From: Kudoa neothunni
Taxonomy: Eukaryota > Animalia > Cnidaria
NCBI GenBank assembly: GCA_964304625.1
Contig: OZ199839.1
Location: forward strand, 8,340,560-8,404,559
Direction of reading: 5' to 3'
DNA length: 64,000 nt
Part shown: one piece after another, positions 2,412 to 16,007 of the stretch
How positions within the stretch are numbered: the first letter of the stretch is position 1
How the letters are laid out: each line of letters opens with the position of its first letter
The notes under the pieces: model-generated
Database searches by the model: none
What the model saw: only the letters and a program-made list of their open reading frames with translations
Told to the model about the DNA's origin: nothing
Position numbers and translations under genes: made by a program

Positions 2412-4059
2412 ATTTTTTCGTTATTAATAGTTATTTTGAGCAGATTTTATTTAAATTATCGTGTTTTAGGAATTATATATTTTTTCTCATTTTTCATAAA
2501 GTCATTATAACAAAAATGTATGTAAATCAATTTAGTTTTCTAGAATAACATTTCAAACACATCATTATTGTTTAAAACCCCAACATATAATGTTTCAACA
2601 CCAATATGCAACTAGCGCACGCGATCGATAACTTTTATAGATCAAAATGAAACATATTTCCAGTTATCAATATTTTCTAAGTTTAAACAATGAGTCTAAA
2701 TTGTTGTTGAAGTTTAAATATTGTTTAGGCATAATATTAGTTGGTCCCTCCATAATAACGTTCAATGGTTCTTATTGTGGGTAGATTTTTATTTCTTACA
2801 ACTGATATCAAATAATGGAATATATCCAACTCGAATTAAGAAAAAGATCCTAACTTGTTAGGGAAATTAGTTTTTAGACAATTTCCGCAAAAATTGTTAT
2901 GCAATCATCATCTACTAAACTTTGAATGAATGATTTTTGCACATTGGTGAGTTTTGATCCACCGTTATAATTTTTTACTGTCTGAACAAATAACTAATTT
3001 ATTTCGTTTTAAAATTCGCCCAATCATTGATTTGAGAACATCCGCAAACTTAGCAATTTATTCATTTGTATATTTCTGAGACATTTCATAAGAAATCAAA
3101 TGGACATTAATTACCTCTGTCAACCGAATCACTCTTGTTCATATTCTTATAGGCAATGTCACATACTTTCGTAAATTTGTGTTAATTCAATTTTGATTCG
3201 GTAAGGGTGTATTTTGACCCGACGTATTACTGAGCTCGTGTAAAAATTTCTTGTTGATTTATAAATAATGTATTTTTAATTAAGATAACGTTCACAACAA
3301 GTTTATTTGATTTTAAAAGATTACTTTCATTTTGATCTTGGAATACTGTAATAGTCCGTAAAAAGTTCGTTTTTTTAGAATCAATTAAAATCACGAAGAA
3401 TATCCAGAGTACCAATACATTAAAATTTAATAAACCTAGATTAACTTAAGTCTAATCATAAATGAGTTTTTGGTTAATTTATACCTATTATCACTTGGTA
3501 GTTTTGGTCAAAATATTTTTTCACAAAACTGTATTTTAATCTTATTTGTGAACGGATCATATGTTTTATGCTATTGCCAGCTAGAATCCAATCAACGACC
3601 TGTAAGAGGTGATATTAAAGTTAATAATTTGGATTTTTTATATTTAACTAGATGTTTTTAGTCCGCTGTTAATCGTTATACACTTAACAGTCAATAGCAA
3701 AATCTGTAATGAACGATAAAATTTATCTAGATAATATTTTTTCGCTCAATTTTCACTCAATTCTGCTTAAAACTTCTCAAATAAAGAGAATTTTATATTC
3801 TTAATAAACTTTTCATCTATTAACCAAAAACCCAAATTGTGCTAGCCTCCAAAATTTATTTATATTATTTTATTATGAATAAAGTAATGTGTTTCATCAT
3901 TTTTAATAGAACAGAGAGAATAATATCAATCCAATAATGAGCTGTATTTCTGAAATAGTATTGTTTTCACAATATATTATATATTCGGTAAGTAATATTA
4001 ATTTAAGAATTGTAACACTTTGACTGGAGTCATTGTAAGGATAGAGATTACTGGAGAAG

Positions 4060-5872
4060 ATGCACAAAGTTATCACACTAATACTTTTATGCGGGATATT
4101 GGCTCCTTTTGAACTTGAGGGATGCACCGGTAAAACAACTGAAGGCTATGAAGTAATTTTTTAGTTTTATAATTTTGTATAATATTAAGTCAGCCTGGAG
4201 TCGCTATGATGTTTCACTTTGGAGAATTATACTTAGCCCTTTATATTTTCAAAATTTCCCCAACAGATAATAACCTTACTTATGAAATACTTTATACAAC
4301 AAACTGCAAATGTAACTAATATTTGTAAAAACTTTAAGTAATTTGATTCAGTGGATAAAGTTGATTCTTTAAATGAAGCGCTTATGGTTATCAAAGGATG
4401 CATTCAAAATATCGTTGAGTCTTATAGTTTTTATTGCCACTTACCTTGTGATCCAATGATTCTGTTTTTTACATTTGAAGCAAACATCTTACCAATGTAA
4501 TCTTGAAATAATACGATGGATTTTGACAATGTTTTAATATAATCTAAGATCTTGGGAGCCGGAATGGTGGGGAGGAATATTTGGTAAAGATAAATGGACA
4601 ATTAACGAACATAGAAAATTAAATCAAGTAACAATATACATGGATAGTGAAGTTGAATCATTACTATTCAATTTGTCTGCAGCTTACGATCCTGTCATTA
4701 GAGTCAGTAAATTTTTCAGATTCTTAACAAATAAAAATAACTAATTAATTATAGGATTTCAGGGATTTGGGAATGCTTTGGATTAGAAATTCAGGATTAA
4801 TTTTTGGTGTTACAAACCAAAAAGCAATACCTAATGTTAAAAATCAGTTTTTATTTTCATTCAATAAAAAACAATATGGAGTCCTGCACAAGAATTTGTT
4901 ATGCTACGGAAATAAAATTTATATTTTACTTCATTTAAAGCTAATTATGGTAAAATGTCCGTTCTATTATTGTGATAATTTAGTGTTTCTAGAAAAACAA
5001 CTACGTTACCACATCGCCTCTGGTTGATCCTTGTGCTTTGTTATATAATACAAGATTTTATATCAAATATTCTTACTCTCACTATTGCTTTAAAAATGGA
5101 TATATTGAAAAAAAGTTTAGTAATAAATATCAGATTTTATCGAGATTTGATTTGATGGAATGCTCCAAGTTGTTACTCGGAACGTTAACAGACCCCAATT
5201 TATGCCCAGAGAATGATTGTTTCACCAAAGATGACGAAGCTGCTCTGAGGAATACTTTTGTTAAATCCATCAATAATAATCAAAAATATTCCTTTATAGT
5301 ATTATTTTAGTGTCGAATTTTACATTTTCAGTCTCCGGTAGATATTACATGAGTTTGGTTCAATGTTAACTCAACAGCTGCATACAGTGGACACCTTGGT
5401 TGAACTAGTATCACAAAACTGTGATCCAACAAAGCAAAAGAAAATGGTATTTTTATCATTATTGTTATTTAAAAAAATATTATGAGAAAACATCAGAGTA
5501 TTTTAAAAAATAAATTCTGCCGATTTCTTGCCTACACATACTTTATTGTTGGTCATTGTGGCGGCCAAAAAGAATTCGTGTTTATGTTTTCCCCATTTGA
5601 AAAAGAAATGTTATCAGCAATTCCGCTACTCGATATACGATTAAATTACCTTCATTTAAATATGTTGTACAGACAAACATTTTATTTCCTCTCACCTGAT
5701 GTAACTTTTTATATTTTTGATCAACCTACGTCATGATTGATACATATCCATGTAGTTTTCTTCATACATAACTACAGCATTACCACAAATGTCGGTCTAC
5801 ATAAAAATTGATGAAAGAGGTAAGACTAGACTACGTAAATATATTTATTTGTTTAAATCCATTTTTGGTTAA
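4060..5872 (+). CDS. Secreted GDA1/CD39 (NTPDase)-fold protein with degenerate apyrase motifs, copy 1 (intact, 9 exons, 478 aa)
   Basis: Exons 4060-4152, 4194-4311, 4352-4496, 4549-4702, 4755-4949, 4993-5298, 5342-5446, 5497-5700 and 5756-5872 splice in frame via GT-AG introns. N-terminus MHKVITLILLCGILAPF is signal-peptide-like. Colinear CD39-like blocks: YGVLHKNLLCYG (cf. YNVYTHSFLCYG), LVDPC (cf. LRDPC), ECSKLL..CPENDCF (cf. QCHQSI..CPYSQCAF), KFCRFLAYTYFIV (cf. EYCFSGTYILSLL). Gene structure is well supported; family call is by eye. Confidence 0.75.
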
Positions 5873-8604
5873 ATTGCTATTTTAAACACTTTTTTAATGC
5901 CACGATATCATTAACCCTTTGTTCACTGTAGTGGAAGAACGATAATTTCGCTTAACAAACGTTACACATAATCGATTAGAAGTTAGAAAATAAAAAAATC
6001 CAAAAAGTAAACGTTAAGTTAAACTTAAACAATAAGATCAATTATATTTCACCAATCAACGCAGAGATAACCGGGGTCAACCGTATGCGTAACCAATTCG
6101 GTGAGTTGTTGTTTGTTTCATTATTTGTGAAAAAAATAATTGGGTATCAAATACTTTATTTACTATCATTCGAAACGGATTCAATATAATTTTTTCCGTC
6201 TGATAACCCAATTATAAGATAGATTGTAAGAGATTATATAGTTAACGCTTATTGAAATTTTCTATTGATTTACTTCTTAATTTACTTATTCGGATACTTT
6301 TTTGATAGTCATAAGTATACTTTATATAAATATAAAAAATTAAGAGAAAGTGCTATCGCTATCATAAAAAACGACCGAGATACCTGAAGTGATTTGATCC
6401 CATGGGAACACACATGAGTTTTTGAACACGTTCCTTCGAAGGTTAATACAATCACAATGGTAACATCAATTTTTTTGCATGCACAATAATCTTGACGTCA
6501 ACTTTTTATTTTCAAAACTATTCTATATTTAAAATATTTTACTTTAAATTGTTGAAATAGAAATACAACAGACTGAGTTTTAGTATATACATTTTTTTCT
6601 TAAAATAAATACATTATATAACTATCGTAAAAGCCCCGCTTCCCTTAGGCTTCCTTGCCCGGCCAAGGCCATATGGAGTTCAATGTAAATTAAGAGTATT
6701 TAAATAAATAGTACAAAGATTACCCAATTAACGGATGATTTATTTAACTAATTGGACGTATGAACCTTATTTAATATTTTTAAAACCGAATAAACACTAC
6801 TGAACGTTTATATTTCCTATTTAATGCTCCTAAAATATCGATTTTCCCCTTGTTGTTTGCAGTAACCTCTAAATCATAACACACAAAATAAGACAAATCT
6901 TGTAAACATCAATAAATGAATTTTATATTAATATTTGACCACATAACCTAATATTACCTTCCTTATTTGATCTGATTCAATTACTAAATTACTTCTCAAT
7001 AATTTTAAATTAAAATAAACACTATGGTACGTCTAAAATTAATTTTTTAAAATTGCCATGAAATGATCCATATGTTATCATAAATCCTCAACTCATACCA
7101 ATCATATCACGTAAGAATGTTTTTAGTCATGTTGTAGGCTGCAAATATTTTAAAATTATTTACATGTTTTTCTCGGTTAAAATAAAATTTTATCTTTCCA
7201 TATGCGTGCTCAAATGGAGTGATTTGACTCTCTATAAAGAATAAAAATTGCGTACACACACACGAACCCTTTAGCTTTATATGTATAGTAGTTAGGTAGA
7301 TAATGAACACACAAAATGCAAATGGCAACAAATATCATTGAGAAAAGAAGAGGTATGTTTACGTGTCAACCGCTCTATCTGAATATATCAATTATACATT
7401 AAAAATATGAAAATCTATAATATAATTGATCAATCCACGAATTTATTGCATAAATACATTTTTAACCTATAAAATAGAGCAAATAAAAATAACTAGTACG
7501 CGTATGCGCCGAAGATGTTTTGTTTGTAATAAAATTGGATATGTGAATTGCATTTATTATTATTTTCTATATTTGTTGACATAGATTATTAGTGTTATCA
7601 TCATGTTGTCTAAATAGTTGGTTCCTACATATTAAATCAAGGATCGACTAGAACAATCGCATTTTACCTTTACATCAATTTTATAAAAAATTTTTGTTTT
7701 TAACCTATCCATTTGGTAAATCTAGAAGATTGGGAAGAAATATTTTTCTGTTCCTATTTATTTTAAATAAACAATCACGATTAAGAAAATAAGGACACTA
7801 GTCAGATAGTTGGCAACTAATTTATGGAAGGCAAGAAAATGATTTCTCTCGAATTTCAATTCATACACAGCACCAAATTTTTGAACCTTTAAAAGAGTTT
7901 CAACAAAGTTAAATAGTAAATACATCGAAATAGCTAAATCCACTATAATGAATATAGTTTAGTCAAATATGTACTTTATTTACGCTAAACGATGAGTTTC
8001 TAATCCATCGTAAATGAACTCTCATCTAATTTATAACTCTTATTTTTAAGTAGGTTTGGTATACAATTTTTCCCCATGAAACTATATTGTAATTTGTTAT
8101 TTGTAAACTTAACATACGTTTGCGTTAGTGTCATCTTGAATCCAGACGATGACCTATTACTGCTGACATAAAAAATTAATAATATATAATCTTCGATGTT
8201 TGGATAGATTTTATTTTATTTAGTTGCTAAATTTATTTACGCTTAACAATCAATAAAAAACTATAGAAATTAACCACTTTTATCTAGATATTAGCTCGTT
8301 CGATTTTCAATTGATTCTACTTGAAACTTCTTAGATAAAGGAAATGTTATCTTCTTAATAAACTTTTCACCAATTCGCCAAAAATTGGAATTGGGCCAAC
8401 CACCAAAATTTATTTATATTTTTTTTACAATAATGCAAAATACTTGTTTCACTATTTTTAATAGACCAGATAGTTTAATATCAATATAATAATGTATCAT
8501 AACTCTAATATAATATTGTTTACAAGAAATATTTTATAAGTAGTGTTAATGACTAAATTTATAATACTCTGGTTAAAATTTGTATGAATAGACCATAACA
8601 AAAT

Positions 8605-11600
8605 ATGCACACAGTTATCACAATATTATTACTATTGGGAATATTGGCCCCTTTTGAACTTGGGGGATGCACCGATAAATCAACTGAAGGCTATGAAGTA
8701 ATTTGTTAGTTTTATAATTTTGTATAATATTAAGTCAGACTGGAATCGCTATGATGTTTTATTATGGAGATTTGTACCTTTCCCTTTATATTTTCAAAAA
8801 ATTCCCCAAGGATAATAGCCTTTCTTATAAAATAATTTTTACAACAAAATGCACATGTAACTAATATTTGTGGAATTTTTAAATGATTTTAGGCTGCGGC
8901 CATTGCGATGGATCCGTTTAATCCCTATGCCGGAGCTGACTAATGTAACGGATGGGAATATCTACTAAAATAACGTTCGTATAAAAACGTTAATTTCATA
9001 AATACATATATTAATAAACGAGCTATAAATAAATAAATAAATTTTCAAAGAAAAATAAACCAATTGACTTTTCACCTATAAATTGGCCAAATATACAAAC
9101 AATGATTAATATTTTTCTTCAATATATTACTACTTAGGTTAATATATATGAGTGGTCTTCAAATCTTGTTGTGTTTAGTTTATACAACAAGAAATAGTGA
9201 TATAAATGATAAGTTAATTTAGAATAGGTGAGCTTGTGTTAATTTGGTTTGTTTGCAACAGTGATTGTAAATAAACTGTTTTGCGATACGAGTTCAATTA
9301 AAATAACTATTTTATATTTCATTTGTGATTTTAATTTTTATAATGGATCTTATCGATAAATAAGCCCATTTTTCGTTTTAATATTAATATCAACTATACG
9401 TAATATGACCACTTAATTTATTTCGAAAAAGATATTTCCCTTCTGTGAATATACACAGAATAATTCAACATCTAATAATAACGGTAAATATGGTCACAAT
9501 GCGAAACTTCAAGAAATATAAGAAGACAAATTTAAACCTGTCCAAATCGCTTATAAAATGCATGTCTACACAAACTAACATACGTCAACGTCTGCAGAAT
9601 ATTGCGAAGAATCTATCCTTAACTCAGTAATTGCTATTAAAAGACTTGAAATTATATTAGAGACAATAATGTCTATAAATAGAAAATTATTAAACATTGT
9701 TTTAAAATATTAATTTAAAATGATGTGACTAACTTTAAGTACAAGGTGAAATCAACGAGAATAACTCGAAATACGACAATCAGGTATAAAATACCGATCT
9801 AAACGAAAAAAGAGATGGTATAATTATAAGTATAAGTTTCTCAAATAAATATTAGGTATCAAACTTTAAACGAATGAAAAGAAAGATGTGAATGAGATTT
9901 CTGAAGCATCCCCAACCAAGTTATCTAATAATCGCTCATCTTAAGATTGGTATAATATGCAAAGTGACCAACAGATAGATGAATGCAAAACCGACGATAA
10001 TGTCTGTTAGGTCTCCGCAAATAAGATACCAGTGAAAACAAACCAATGTGCACAAAACAAAACTAATGCTCGCAATGGATGACAAGCATACCAATGTCAA
10101 AAGTTAAATAATCATATTTAACTTAATATTAATCTTATATAGATTTAATATTTTCCCCCAAAATAAAAACAATAGGACAACCCAATGGTTCTAATCTAAC
10201 AATCATTAAATTACTTAAAAAGTAAAGATGAACAATTTAAACTCATATTAAATATACAAACAATAAAATATTCTATGAAATATATATATCCATTATGAAA
10301 TAACTCCCTTTTCATTTTTACTAGAACAGAAAACAAGTTGAAAATCTCAATTATTTCATCTTAAAAATAGTTATATCCACTTTTATAATAAAATTAATTA
10401 AGAAATATTATCGCTTGTTTTTAACTACATTTGATCAAGGCAATATCATAGAATTGATAAAAACAAAATGAAACACATTAGACCAGTGATTCCCAATGGG
10501 GGGGGGGTTCGAAAATTTAATCAAGAATACATAAAATAGCTCCCGAAAAACAGCAGAAATCTCATTAGTTATATATTTATATTATTTATTATTTGTTGTT
10601 TTGTGATTGAAAAAATAGAAAATTAATACGTGGAATTTTTTCTTGGCTTTTTAAAAATATATATACTGAATTCTTAACACAATTCTCATATTAATTGATA
10701 AGGGTTTGATAGACCCATAAGTGTGTCTAAAAGAGTTCGAAAACGCCCCAAAATTTGGGAACCACTCAACTAGGGGTATTTTTAGCATGAACGCTAACTC
10801 TCTTAATAAGATCAACGTTCCTTGTAATTTCTTATAAAAATTACAATATTTATATAAAGGTTTCTTAAAATACAATTTAAAGATAAATTCCTGACGAAAG
10901 CTTCGGTTTAATTTATGCATAATTAATTAATTTACATGTAGAAAGTCAACTGATTTATTTTCGTTAAAGGATTTATTTATTAATAATTCACTTATTGTTA
11001 TATATATTTATGAGATTGAAATTTTAATACGAACGTTATTCTAGTAGATATTCCCATCCGTTACATTAGTCATCCCCGGCATAGGGAGTAAACTGATTCG
11101 TTGCAATAGTCCAGTGCCATGATTTTATATAGTGGTTAAAGTTGATTCTTTAAATGATGCGATGTTGGTTATAAAAGGGTGCATTAAATATATCGTTGAG
11201 GCCAATAGTTCCTACTGTCGTTTAATTTTTGAACCAATGATTCTGTTCTTTGGATTTGAAATTAACGTTTTACCAATGTAATCTCGCAATTGTAGGGTAG
11301 GTAATGATGTAGTTTTTTACATAATTTAAGGTCTTGGAAGCAAAAATGGTGGACGGAAATTTTTTTTCATGGTAAATGGATAATTGATAAAAATAGAAAA
11401 ATTAAACCAAGTCGCAATATACATGGACAAACAAGTTGAATCACTATTGTTCAGTTTGTCTGCAGCTTACGATCATATCGATGGAGTTAATAATTTTTTT
11501 CAGATTCTTACCGTTTAAAATTAATTAATAAATTATAGGATTTTAAGGATTTGGGAATGCTTTGGATCAGGAACTTTGGATTGATTTTTGGTGTTGCAGT

Positions 11601-12637
11601 CTCAAATGCCGATGTCGAATGTTAAAAATCAATTTTTTTTTTCATTCAATAAAAAAAAATATGGAGTTATACATAGAAATTTGTTATGCTACGGAAATAT
11701 CCAAATTAATGTTTTACTTCATTTAAAGCTGATAATAGTAATATGTTCGTTCTGCTTTTTCGATAAATTAAATGTTTCTAGAAAAATAACTTCGTTAACA
11801 CATCGCCTCTGGTTGATCCTTGTGCTTTGTTATATAAGCCAAGATTTTACATTAATTATTCCTATTCACATTATTGCTTAAAAAATAGATACAATGAGGA
11901 CAAATTCACAAGATAAATATCCAATTTTATCCAGGTTTGATTTGGTGGAATGCTCAAAGTTGTTACACGAAACGTTAACAGACTCTAATTTATGCTCGGA
12001 GAATGATTGCTTCACCCAAGGAAGATGAAACTGCTCTAAGAAATGCATTTTCCGAATCTACCAATGATAATATTAAAAATCCCTTTATAGTATTAATTTT
12101 ATGGCCAAATTTTCAATTTTCACTCTCCAGTAGGTATTGCATGAGTTTGGTTCAATGTTAACTCGAAAAGCGTATACGTTGAATAGTTTGGTTAAACTAA
12201 TATCGCAAAAGTGTGATCCAAAAAATCAAAAGAAAATGGTATTTTTATGATTATTTAACAATATATTATCAGATAACATTAGAATCTACTAAAAAATCAA
12301 TTTTGCCGTTTTCTTGCCTACACATACTCTATTATTGATCATTATGGTGGACAAAAATTTTTTATGTTTATATTTTCCTCAGTTGAAAATAAAATGTTAT
12401 CAGCAATCCCATTATTCGACCTACGATTAAATCACCTTCATTTAAATATGATATACAGAGAAAAAATATTATTTCCTCTCATCTGATGTACCATTTCATA
12501 TTCTTTACGAACTATGTCATGCTCCATACATATCCATTTAGTTTTCTTCACACATAACCACAGCCTTACCAGAAATATGGATCTACGTAAAAAGTGAGGA
12601 AATAGTCAAAACTAAACTACGTATATTTATTTTTTAA
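8605..12637 (+). CDS. CD39/NTPDase-fold gene, copy 2 (paralogue; five +1 homopolymer frameshifts; intron 2 expanded by a Mutator-like insertion)
   Basis: Same 9-exon structure and splice sites as 4060-5872, with clearly diverged sequence. I found no nonsense substitutions; the only lesions are single extra bases at ~11401, ~11610, ~11911, ~12016 and ~12466. Could be a pseudogene or an intact gene with assembly errors. Confidence 0.7.
8892..11118. mobile_element. Non-autonomous Mutator-like (MULE) element, 2227 bp
   Basis: Perfect 9-bp TSD ATGATTTTA (8883-8891 and 11119-11127). TIRs of ~140 bp start GGC and share the core TGACTAATGTAACGGATGGGAATATCTACTA. The element is absent from the matching intron of copy 1. 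Confidence 0.9.
10484..10767. mobile_element. hAT (Charlie-like) MITE nested in the MULE
   Basis: Ends CAGTGATTCCCAA ... TTGGGAACCACTC. Flanks contain TAG at the hAT-typical position, but the TSD is degenerate. Confidence 0.55.
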
Positions 12638-15623
12638 CTCCATTTTTGTTTAAATCGTCAATATAACCTCTCTTTTAATATGACGATATCTTCAATTAAA
12701 CAATAATTTTTAATATTGAATAAAATAGGACGTGTATTAATTATATAAAATCTAACTAACACATAATCTATGATCTGATAAACTTTGAAGTTAAAAATGG
12801 ATTAACAATTCATATTCTACCTATGAATCAATTTTCATATGGAATTTTTTCCCCTTACTAACTTAATAATGATAGGTATCATAAATAATTTTTAGGTAAT
12901 AAATCTCGGTTCGTGTTAATTCACTATAAATGCACATATCACATATGTTAAGGAGGAGTTTATAACTACTAATAAAATGGTCTAAACTACAAAATCATGA
13001 CATCTTTATAATTATTCATGATAATAATTACTAATCGACCTTATTAGGATGTAAACATTGTTTTAAATACTAAATGAAATAGTATTAATTCTCCACGGTA
13101 CACTTGATAGTTGTTGATTTGGATTTACCAAATAAAATTCAAAAATCACTAAATCAACCATAAACAAAATAAAAGATTATATTATTAATTTAAGAAAATT
13201 TGTTAGATTTTAATTAATTATTTATTATCGTCTACAGCTCAGCTTTTGGAGTATTTTGTTTTAATAGGTATCTTTGGACTATTAGAAAAAATACTCTAAT
13301 ACTTCGAATTAAACCATAGTTATAGTTAAAATAAAAATTAAGTTAATCTTTTAACAAACTTGGATGCATTACATCCCAAATAGACTATAATCCCTATATA
13401 AAAATTTTGCACTTTCTTTTAAAATAATTGACATTTTCGTTATTCTCCAAAATAAATAATATATACCAATATTAAAAGTTTGAAAAAAAATAATCATGAG
13501 TAGGTGGTGAACAAAAAATTTATCATCAAACGAACTTTAAGATAAAAATAATCTTTGATTTTGTTGTAATCGTTGTATTCAAAAAATTTCTACGAAGTGA
13601 CTCTGAGAGTAAAAACATATTTTTTCGATGGTTTTTTATAGAAAAATGGTAATTATTACAATAAGTAATTTTAAATAATTTGACTTAATTATCGTAGGAA
13701 ATAATTTGTGGAATATAGATAAATAGTAACCGTTGTCACGATGGCTGTAGACGCTCAAAACGCGGATTAACGTTTCTTAACCCCCTTTTATTCCGAAATT
13801 TTTTGTTTGCACTCTGAAAATAATATATTACATATAAATTGTTAGTTATAAAGAATTAAAAAGTTAAAATGTCATAAAATTTTGTATCAGTTAGTATCAT
13901 TAAATTGCTAGAATAAATGATAATAAAATAAAAATCTTATTCGTATGTGTCATAAACATGTAAATTTTGACAACATCTATGAAATGCATTGCAAACATAT
14001 TTTGAATCATATCTGTAAACAACGGATTAATACGATCAATGTGCTCATATCGAACAATTGCAACATAAATGAACGTCAAATTTGGTGTCAATTTCTCATG
14101 TTCGAAACTATTCGGTATCAAAATCTTTAATTTTAAACTTGTAAAAAAATATAATTAGATAGAATCTTAGCATAAATATTTTATCTTGGAGTAGATTTAT
14201 TATATAATTATAAATAATGCCAATAATAATTTGTTTGATTATAATATTTTTGGATCGATTTAAACCGTCAATTTTTATTAGGGAGGTTGGATGTTTATTA
14301 TTTAAAATAAATTTTTTCCGAATCCTGCAAGTTAAAGTTACCTAAAAAAACCAAACCTTATGCAGAAACATATTGCACTACTGAAACATCGTTCAATGAT
14401 AGAATCGTTAAAACATGCCTCTACTGGCCCCTTTTGTTATTTATATATAGATCGTAAAAATAAAGAATAAAGATTTATCTTGTTACAGCTGTAGTGGTGT
14501 ATGATGGATTACTATTTTAACTAATAGATAGTTACATAAGACCTAGAAGTTTTTCCAAAAAATATTGTCCTACAGCATGTTCACTTTCTAGTGCTAAAAC
14601 TTTTGTTGATAAGCACTTTCTTACATTTGTTGTAAAAAAATATTTTGGCAACGGCCCATCTTTCCGACAATTTTTATGGATTTTTTAAACTTACCGCTGT
14701 CTTCAATTGCAGTAAAAAATTTGTAGAGAGATTAGGCGTGTTTTTTCATGGGAGATAATATTTCCTTCGAAAGAAATAATCTCTATGGTACCATAATTAT
14801 ATTAAAATGGTGAAATTAATTATAATTTTATTGCATTCTGTGTAATGTTAACTTGTGTTTTTTGCATCATAGGTGTGTTTGTGTAGATCTGTGTATAATC
14901 TCTTTATACGTAAAAGTGTCGAAAAACTACATTTATTTAAAATCGTCGAGAATTCCGTGTCCTAATTACATATAACAATAATTCTTCTATAACTTTTTCT
15001 AATTAATTTCCTAACTTTTTAAATAAATGATAATAATCCAAGAGGGCTCGTATGTAATGTAATGTAATGAGTCGGAGAATGGAGTCTCATTATGTGGCAT
15101 CCCTGTTTTACGTACGAGACATATTTTTTATTTTTATTTGTTTGGATAACTAAGAGTATTTTCTATATTATAAATGATAATTAAAACGTTAAAACATGGT
15201 TTAGTCTAAAATGGCGATTACAAATAGACCCTATTGCACTATGTATATTCTATTATATTTCCAATAAAATAAAATCCAGAAATTTTTCCCACATTATTGG
15301 GCTGGCTGTGTACATTTTCGCCTAAATTTTCATTGTTCTACAAAATCAATTTATCATTTAAAATTACTGTCATTATATAGTTTATAATATTTTTAAATTT
15401 TTAAAATCTAAAATGGATAAATAATTGACTGTTCTAAAAAATAATTCTTATTTTACAAATAGCCTTTTTAACGTCTTCAGTCACGGATTATCTAGAGCAA
15501 TACACGAAAACTTCAGGTAAATTCTCAACTGAGATTTTTGTTATAAAAATTTTACAATCTCTATAATCTATCTATTATAGAAAACTTTGTTTTCTTCGTC
15601 AACGGAACTGTCCGAACGATTAT

Positions 15624-16007
15624 ATGGAAAGTTCAGAAACTTTTTCGGATACTTATTTCTCATCAACATCAACATCAATATCAATATCAATATCAACATC
15701 AACATCAACATCAATATCAACATCAACATCAACATCAATATCAACATCAACATCACACATCAATATCAACATCAACATCAACATCAATATCAATTTTGAT
15801 ACCTCAAAGAGTTGGGAAATTGTTACAACTGCTTATGCTCCATTAAAATTTATCAATCCCACGCAAAAGATTTCCCCCAAAAATGATGGCAAAGTCATAA
15901 CCTGCGTTTTGTTAGGTGTTTTCATCCTAATGTTGTTGTTTGTCGTAATAATGTGGAGGAACTGCTTCTGCTGCAGGAGATGCTATAATACAGTTATATT
16001 AACATAA
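15624..16007 (+). CDS. Possible 3' exon of a small mucin-like type-I membrane protein
   Basis: Ser/Thr-rich repeat, then hydrophobic VITCVLLGVFILMLLFVVIMW and a Cys-rich tail RNCFCCRRC. A candidate intron lies at 15517-15580. No convincing start or signal exon found. Confidence 0.4.
   Translation: MESSETFSDTYFSSTSTSISISISTSTSTSISTSTSTSISTSTSHININININININFDTSKSWEIVTTAYAPLKFINPTQKISPKNDGKVITCVLLGVFILMLLFVVIMWRNCFCCRRCYNTVILT
15661..15793. repeat. Hexamer microsatellite (CATCAA/TATCAA)n
   Basis: About 22 units, with a one-base slip (CATCACACATC) near 15755. Confidence 0.95.

Follow-up and report, generated by a model that had tools for sequence, protein, structure and literature searches.

Cell-surface NTPDases (CD39/ENTPD1, ENTPD2, 3 and 8; PF01150; 3ZX0/3ZX3, 3CJ1/3CJA) are enzymes with a transmembrane (TM) helix at both ends and five apyrase conserved regions, ACR1 to ACR5, in which the glutamate of ACR3 is the general base. 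The legume lectin-nucleotide phosphohydrolase (LNP) combines apyrase activity with the binding of Nod factors, which shows that the ectodomain of a GDA1/CD39 protein can work as a module for ligand binding. Parasites, for their part, are known to carry families of dead enzymes at their surface or in their secretome: the inactive trans-sialidase-like proteins of trypanosomes, the ROP pseudokinases of Toxoplasma and the SERA pseudoproteases of Plasmodium. In these families, catalytic residues were lost, the genes multiplied in one lineage, the products are exported, and binding or regulatory roles are documented. Here we describe a gene, called copy 1, of the myxozoan Kudoa neothunni, a parasite of fish muscle, together with the family to which it belongs. 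The gene lies in a stretch of 64,000 nucleotides, referred to as the window (assembly GCA_964304625.1, contig OZ199839.1, positions 8,340,560 to 8,404,559 of the forward strand), and is followed by a tandem duplicate, copy 2. The reading that we favor, and to which we give roughly three chances in four, is that the product of copy 1 is secreted, braced by disulfides and derived from a cell-surface-type NTPDase, and would no longer be able to hydrolyse nucleotides.

The family resembles the cell-surface NTPDases in three respects: its profile is colinear with theirs from ACR1 to the last helix, it has the 'Y.VY..S.LCYG' stretch, a Pro-Cys and later cysteines, and its topology is extracellular or secretory. 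It differs from them in its motifs, since ACR1, ACR2 and ACR4 are replaced, ACR5 cannot be aligned, and the Pfam threshold is missed when the genes are searched exon by exon. It also differs in its anchoring: instead of a TM helix at both ends, most paralogues have a single C-terminal one, placed after a stalk, and copy 1 has none. The same genome contains a canonical member of the superfamily, L001 (G000:C2:7278507-7279569), which scores 119 bits against PF01150 and in which DAGSTGSR, ATAGMR, G..EG, ELGGAS and W..G are intact. In L001, a single exon holds ACR2 to ACR4, against three exons in the family, and the motif LGYG stands where the family has LCYG. In a second, divergent NTPDase-like gene, L003 (G000:C1:884130-887228, minus strand), ACR4 is intact (VVDIGGSSLQV) and E-x-E..Y.F resembles ACR3; the PF01150 match of this gene, at E 0.02, falls on the ACR1 exon only. 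As for the dead enzymes of other parasites, the course of events looks similar, with a different fold and a different phylum, and with the difference that our family is known here from sequence alone. LNP, in contrast to the family, keeps its apyrase motifs and its activity.

Copy 1 extends over window positions 4060-5872 of the plus strand, and its nine exons, listed in Table 1, join into 1437 nucleotides, or 478 codons, with a single stop at the end. This is exactly the gene of about 480 amino acids claimed in an earlier note, which was written from the letters of the stretch. The eight introns measure between 40 and 55 nucleotides and all have GT..AG borders, in keeping with an AT-rich window (25-36% GC) whose introns are short and of the same type. 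For comparison, the genome paper reports an assembly of 40.2 Mb in three chromosomes and a circular contig for the mitochondrion, with 30.4% GC, a median intron of 49 bp and a median exon of 112 bp (PMC12239612). With the base composition of the window, the chance that a random frame of 478 codons stays open is about 1e-18. The only strongly hydrophobic segment of the predicted protein, residues 4-22 (Kyte-Doolittle 1.9), is N-terminal and signal-like, and there is no C-terminal TM helix, both as previously proposed; no stalk/TM-type or hydrophobic exon is found within 2.5 kb downstream.

The duplicated unit pairs window positions 3800-5909 with 8354-8889 and 11122-12690, at about 79% DNA identity and with both copies on the plus strand. 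The earlier note had seen two diverged nine-exon paralogues, both kept under selection. The two tandem copies are indeed there, but copy 2, as assembled, does not encode a protein of about 480 amino acids; copy 1 alone is intact, and copy 2 is decaying. Five +1 frameshifts fall in exon 4 (11397), exon 5 (11602), exon 6 (11909 and 12015) and exon 8 (12460), and copy 2 also has a 3-nucleotide insertion at 11700, a 5-nucleotide deletion in exon 9 near 12632, and a transposon. In a genome-wide protein search, its exon 6 appears divided into two frames with a stop. Three of the five frameshifting insertions lie in short homopolymers, in an assembly reported, in the genome paper, to rest on about 7x HiFi coverage with a quality value (QV) of 48.5 (PMC12239612); given this QV, five assembly errors within the 1.4 kb of copy 2 are very unlikely. 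All 16 splice dinucleotides of copy 2 are kept and, once the frameshifting bases are ignored, no in-frame stop remains. Ignoring the same bases, the two copies differ at 89, 62 and 115 first, second and third codon positions, thus least at the second, with a synonymous divergence (dS) of 0.42 and a nonsynonymous to synonymous ratio (dN/dS) of 0.40; the calculation of this ratio had been suggested in the earlier note. Our own reading is that copy 2, a recent tandem duplicate, would have remained functional for the greater part of its existence and lost its function not long ago.

With a dying twin at hand, copy 1 could itself be a silent relic: an anchorless partial duplicate that lost its stalk/TM exon, is unexpressed, and still has an open frame merely because too little time has passed since the duplication. 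Copy 1 has neither the stalk nor the TM helix found in most paralogues, and its exon 9 contains, 17 codons ahead of the stop, a strong consensus-like donor in phase 1, GAG followed by GTAAGA (from about 5820, window 5815-5830), where copy 2 reads GTCAAA. This donor looks like an old junction to a lost stalk exon. Identity between the copies is the same in exons and introns (81.4% and 80.5%) and, a point that counts against our own reading as well, almost no transcript reads mapped to K. neothunni according to the genome paper (PMC12239612). However, at a dS of 0.42, copy 1 is free of any frameshift or stop in its 1437 nucleotides and its splice sites are intact, while its twin took, in the same time, six disabling indels and a transposon. 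The distribution of differences over codon positions and the dN/dS value both indicate constraint over most of the divergence, and another member, L009, also seems anchorless within its own locus. We therefore consider it unlikely that copy 1 is such a relic.

The case for descent from GDA1/CD39 NTPDases was built at three levels. At the first level, a profile of exon 5 made from nine family members was compared with 177,635 distinct PDB sequences: the top five matches are rat NTPDase1 or NTPDase2, with E 0.03-0.17, and they span the region from ACR4 to 'FLCYG'; the sixth, at E 1.4, is an unrelated fatty-acid-binding protein. The same profile enlarged to 27 members yields the identical five NTPDase1/2 matches, and nothing else.

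At the second level, profiles of single exons were compared, using hhalign, with an alignment of 45 eukaryotic NTPDases that includes coral ENTPD1-like proteins. Exon 5 aligns with columns 249-304 (P 3.4e-4) and exon 6 with columns 316-360, Pro-Cys included (P 1.2e-3); exon 8 aligns with columns 433-448, which hold the 'CF..YI..LL' helix (P 0.059), and exon 2 with columns 109-121, just after ACR1 (P 0.21). Exons 3 and 4 give no alignment (P 0.29 and 0.22). The four exons that can be placed are colinear on the NTPDase profile, and the Fisher combination of the six values is P 1.7e-5.

At the third level, we used spliced models of ten members. The family is divided into three groups: subfamily A consists of copy 1 and L007-L012, subfamily C of L014, L024 and L025, and subfamily B of a large tandem array, described below, and L013. 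The models comprise copy 1, the six paralogues of subfamily A (L010 from exon 4 on) and the three members of subfamily C, with junctions chosen by frame, GT..AG borders and conserved phases. Intron positions and phases (0,1,2,0,0,0,0) are common to all ten genes, the second intron of L014, L024 and L025 being ambiguous and assigned phase 1 by analogy with subfamily A. Against a profile of 105 eukaryotic NTPDases, subfamily A alone obtains P 1.1e-8 in local mode (probability 95.6%, 215 columns) and P 2.6e-9 in global mode (95.9%, 407 columns); subfamilies A and C together obtain P 2e-9 locally (96.2%, 332 columns) and P 2.6e-11 globally (97.5%, 406 columns). Reversed alignments, used as controls, give P 0.34-0.65, and column shuffles score 12-13 (standard deviation 1.5-1.8) and at most 15.3, where the real alignments score 73-79. 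The eukaryotic set is needed for this result, as a bacterial NTPDase profile is much weaker (P 1.2e-3).

Several results point the other way. PF01150 (GDA1_CD39) has no match at E<=10 in any exon of copy 1, L014 or L024, searched one by one (nine and ten exons), and a six-frame scan of the genome with the same model reaches the canonical L001 and, weakly, L003, but no member of the family. The profiles of exons 2, 3, 4, 6 and 8 retrieve no NTPDase among the PDB sequences. An AlphaFold2 model of exon 6 alone, computed from 27 rows, has a mean local confidence (pLDDT) of 63.7, and Foldseek finds no significant match for it, NTPDase1 being at rank 12 with E 6. The strongest statistics depend on spliced paralogue models that we built ourselves. 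Finally, subfamily C, although clearly related to subfamily A in a profile comparison (P 1e-6 to 1e-8), is weak against the eukaryotic NTPDases when taken alone (P 9e-4 to 0.14), and fails as a bridge to the canonical enzymes.

Together with searches of the ESM Atlas by features, in which exons 5 and 6 gave no usable match, these results could suggest that the family is not derived from NTPDases at all, and is an orphan cysteine-rich ectodomain that resembles CD39 by chance or convergence: no Pfam model recognizes it, four to five exon profiles have no PDB result, and the exon-6 model has no structural match. We hold this to be very improbable, given profile-profile matches at P 1e-8 to 3e-11 that cover as many as 406 colinear columns and are absent from the reversed and shuffled controls, PDB matches of the exon-5 profile that are NTPDases, and the fact that the NTPDase Pro-Cys, three further cysteines and the glycine of L.YG fall on residues that are invariant in the family. 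The descent proposed in the earlier note is thus well supported by the comparison of profiles, with homology that would extend over nearly the whole length of the protein; the Pfam check that it recommended, run on exons, is negative, and the similarity becomes significant with profile-profile methods.

If the family descends from NTPDases, it is possible to follow what became of their catalytic residues. We took the columns with at least 80% conservation among the 105 NTPDases and located them in the ten modelled members. In ACR1, the consensus D-A-G-S-S-G-.-R faces M37-F38-H39-F40-G41-E42-.-Y44 in copy 1, and no member has the aspartate. In ACR2, A-T-A-G-M-R faces T111-F112-E113-A114-N115-I116; the glycine and the arginine are gone in all ten members, and the threonine is present only in the three members of subfamily C. 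In ACR3, the catalytic glutamate is kept as E155 in copy 1 and in all seven members of subfamily A, and is replaced by N in subfamily C; the flanking glycines of G-x-x-E-G are lost. In ACR4, D-.-G-G-A-S-.-Q faces W179-I180-R181-N182-S183-G184-.-I186, and the motif is replaced in the family, with the exceptions of the first glycine in the three members of subfamily C and of the serine in L007 and L014. The W and G columns of ACR5 (G-x-x-x-x-W-x-L-G) remain unaligned in the global profile alignment, and an invariant D-x-R is found nearby.

The residues that stand in for the ACR1, ACR2 and ACR4 loops are hydrophobic or otherwise unrelated. The erosion of ACR1 and ACR4 and the retention of the ACR3 glutamate agree with what had been read by eye. 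The loss of ACR2 does too, but its reading as FTFE was off by one residue. One candidate for a surviving DXG of ACR4, 'RDLG' in exon 5, is ruled out by the profile alignments, which put ACR4 four residues later. The metal cofactor of NTPDases is held, in all productive complexes, by the DXG aspartates of ACR1 and ACR4, and the conserved contacts with phosphate come from ACR1-5 (PMC12489842). On sequence grounds, canonical nucleotide hydrolysis by copy 1 would therefore be excluded. The idea of an atypical active enzyme, which would still bind or hydrolyse nucleotides through a rewired site containing E155 and perhaps the new invariant motifs W..W of exon 4 and D-x-R of exon 8, is scarcely credible in view of the residues missing from ACR1, ACR2 and ACR4, whose lost loops make conserved phosphate and metal contacts (PMC12489842). 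Copy 1 would thus fit the definition of a pseudoenzyme: homology to an enzyme, loss of the catalytic residues, and constraint, as suggested by the open frame, the dN/dS value and the conserved scaffold.

This scaffold is the part of the NTPDase that the family seems to have retained. The glycine of L.YG, P248-C249, C292, C364 and C380 are kept in nine or ten of the ten modelled members, and P248-C249, C292, C364 and C380 sit on NTPDase columns conserved at 83-94% or more; these scaffold residues are conserved across paralogues that are only 15-35% identical. Among 27 members, 12 have both the cysteine of LCYG (exon 5) and that of HYC (exon 6), the other 15 have neither, and no member has only one of the two. 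The DPC and MEC cysteines occur throughout the 27, and C306 and C311, which lie close together, are mostly kept or lost as a pair. The retention of structural cysteines, as read in the earlier note, is thus supported both by the NTPDase columns that they match and by their paired presence or absence. These patterns of co-occurrence fit disulfides C220-C267, C249-C292 and C306-C311. However, the members that lack both the LCYG and HYC cysteines form one clade, so their joint loss may be a single event. The spacings of the pairs would fit the five disulfides described for ENTPD3.

Table 1. Features of copy 1, copy 2 and the inserted element, in window coordinates.
Feature	Position	Strand	Description
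Copy 1 exon 1	4060..4152	+	Start codon and signal-like hydrophobic N-terminus; 31 codons, ends in phase 0
Copy 1 exon 2	4194..4311	+	ACR1 position: DAGSSG replaced by M-F-H-F-G-E (residues 37-42)
Copy 1 exon 3	4352..4496	+	Invariant Cys87; ACR2 position: ATAGMR replaced by T-F-E-A-N-I
Copy 1 exon 4	4549..4702	+	W..W motif; ACR3 position, Glu155 kept
Copy 1 exon 5	4755..4949	+	ACR4 position (Asp replaced by W179, GG by R181-N182); LCYG motif
Copy 1 exon 6	4993..5298	+	Cys-rich: DPC (C249), C267, C292, C306/C311 pair
Copy 1 exon 7	5342..5446	+	Contains C364
Copy 1 exon 8	5497..5700	+	'N..CF' helix (C380); family-invariant D-x-R motif
Copy 1 exon 9 and stop	5756..5872	+	No stalk, no TM; internal, unused-looking GTAAGA donor
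Copy 2 pseudogene	8605..12653	+	Exons projected from copy 1 by global alignment
Copy 2 projected exons 1-5	8605-8697, 8739-8856, 11133-11277, 11331-11485, 11539-11737	+	Global alignment
Copy 2 projected exons 6-9	11782-12089, 12134-12238, 12283-12487, 12542-12653	+	Global alignment
Terminal inverted repeat (TIR) transposon in copy 2 intron 2	8890..11121		2.2 kb; inverted termini 8902-9056 and 10953-11107

The element that interrupts intron 2 of copy 2 has inverted termini of 155 nucleotides that are 81% complementary. Copies of their terminal 116 nucleotides are found at 40 or more sites, spread over all three chromosomes, and they often face each other in pairs at a distance of 1.2-2 kb. The inverted termini and this recurrence in facing pairs identify the element as a member of a TIR family of DNA transposons. 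Further downstream, positions 15581-16007 of the plus strand contain the terminal exon of another surface-protein gene, with a Ser/Thr stalk derived from a (TSTSIS)n-like microsatellite, one TM helix (VITCVLLGVFILMLLFVVIMW) and a Cys-rich tail; the upstream exon ends at 15517, and the intron between them has 63 nucleotides and is in phase 2. We considered whether this could be a distant final exon of either copy and rejected the idea: it is preceded by an exon of its own gene and requires a junction in phase 2, whereas the donor in exon 9 of copy 1 is in phase 1. The exon-6 profile finds no ectodomain of the family between 12.7 and 15.5 kb of the window.

We now turn to the family as a whole, which is restricted to one lineage. 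Exon 6 of copy 1, used alone, matches eight dispersed paralogues at 21-35% identity, and a profile of exon-6 paralogues raises the number of matches in the K. neothunni genome to 55, hence at least 55 members, or about 1% of roughly 5,300 predicted genes. This is a scale that the earlier note, in recommending a count of the family, had missed. A single hidden Markov model of the whole family, when iterated, shrank to the core formed by exons 5 and 6. About 22 members form a tandem array at C1:16.15-16.36 Mb, spaced 5-10 kb apart, whose loci include L026-L029, L031, L033-L036, L039 and L044, among others. Most members end with a Ser/Thr-rich or acidic stalk of tandem repeats, one TM helix and a short tail, and are thus membrane-anchored through the stalk; copy 1 is not. 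The stalks of the subfamily B array are built of differing tandem repeats, for example ESTQEV(D/S)ES units in L028, and in this subfamily both cysteines of the LCYG/HYC pair are lost.

Two near-identical members, L024 (C2:11.90 Mb) and L025 (C1:16.99 Mb), lie on different chromosomes and so point to a very recent duplication from one chromosome to another; L025 has an apparent stop between the part of the exon that holds D-P-R and the TM part. In L010 (G000:C2:11564760-11567972), a member of subfamily A, the region of exons 2 and 3 lies in two frames, and this locus is possibly another decaying copy. Outside of this genome, the exon-6 profile was compared with 1.84 billion representative public proteins, among which no true relative was found. 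The sole match, P0001, is an Olduvai-domain (human NBPF-like) protein that shares only a short repeated stretch, and it was dropped.

What could such proteins do? In the mechanism that we propose, the two-lobed fold would be kept as a scaffold, and the old active-site cleft, or the surface of the protein, would bind instead of catalysing. A scaffold that binds would in turn allow the family members to act as surface receptors, adhesins or coat proteins of the parasite, and copy 1, without stalk or anchor, would be released in soluble form. Taken together, the signal peptide, an ectodomain that is braced by disulfides and has lost its chemistry, the new invariant motifs, and the stalks, which vary greatly in length and composition and each come with one TM helix, suggest exported surface proteins with a binding role, and we give moderate weight to copy 1 as their soluble version. 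A more specific scenario would explain why catalysis was lost: since the plasmodia live in muscle fibres and face millimolar host ATP, an active enzyme would drain the host cell, and selection would have killed its activity. The family would then be a surface coat made from an inactivated ecto-apyrase, whose fold was kept as a binding platform and multiplied with variable stalks, while the anchorless copies would be soluble effectors or decoys sent into the host fibre. We find this scenario rather doubtful in its entirety.

Myxozoan genomes are rich in unexplained lineage-specific genes and, to our knowledge, almost nothing is known of the surface molecules of these cnidarian parasites. Our full-text searches of the literature returned no described family of dead NTPDases, and no apyrase-like family or apyrase expansion in Myxozoa. 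A search by terms in two myxozoan genome papers, the G3 2025 article (PMC12239612) and the S. molnari preprint, likewise found no mention of apyrases.

The family described here ties a large group of orphan genes to a known fold, by descent and with the enzyme chemistry erased, and it thus comes with a fold to model, residues to mutate and antigens to localise. Confirmation of the fold would add GDA1/CD39 to the enzyme families that are known to yield pseudoenzymes. The window itself contributes two views of this family: one of an anchorless member that may be a secreted form, and one of the birth and death of its genes, with a tandem duplicate caught in the middle of its decay and a transposon inside it.

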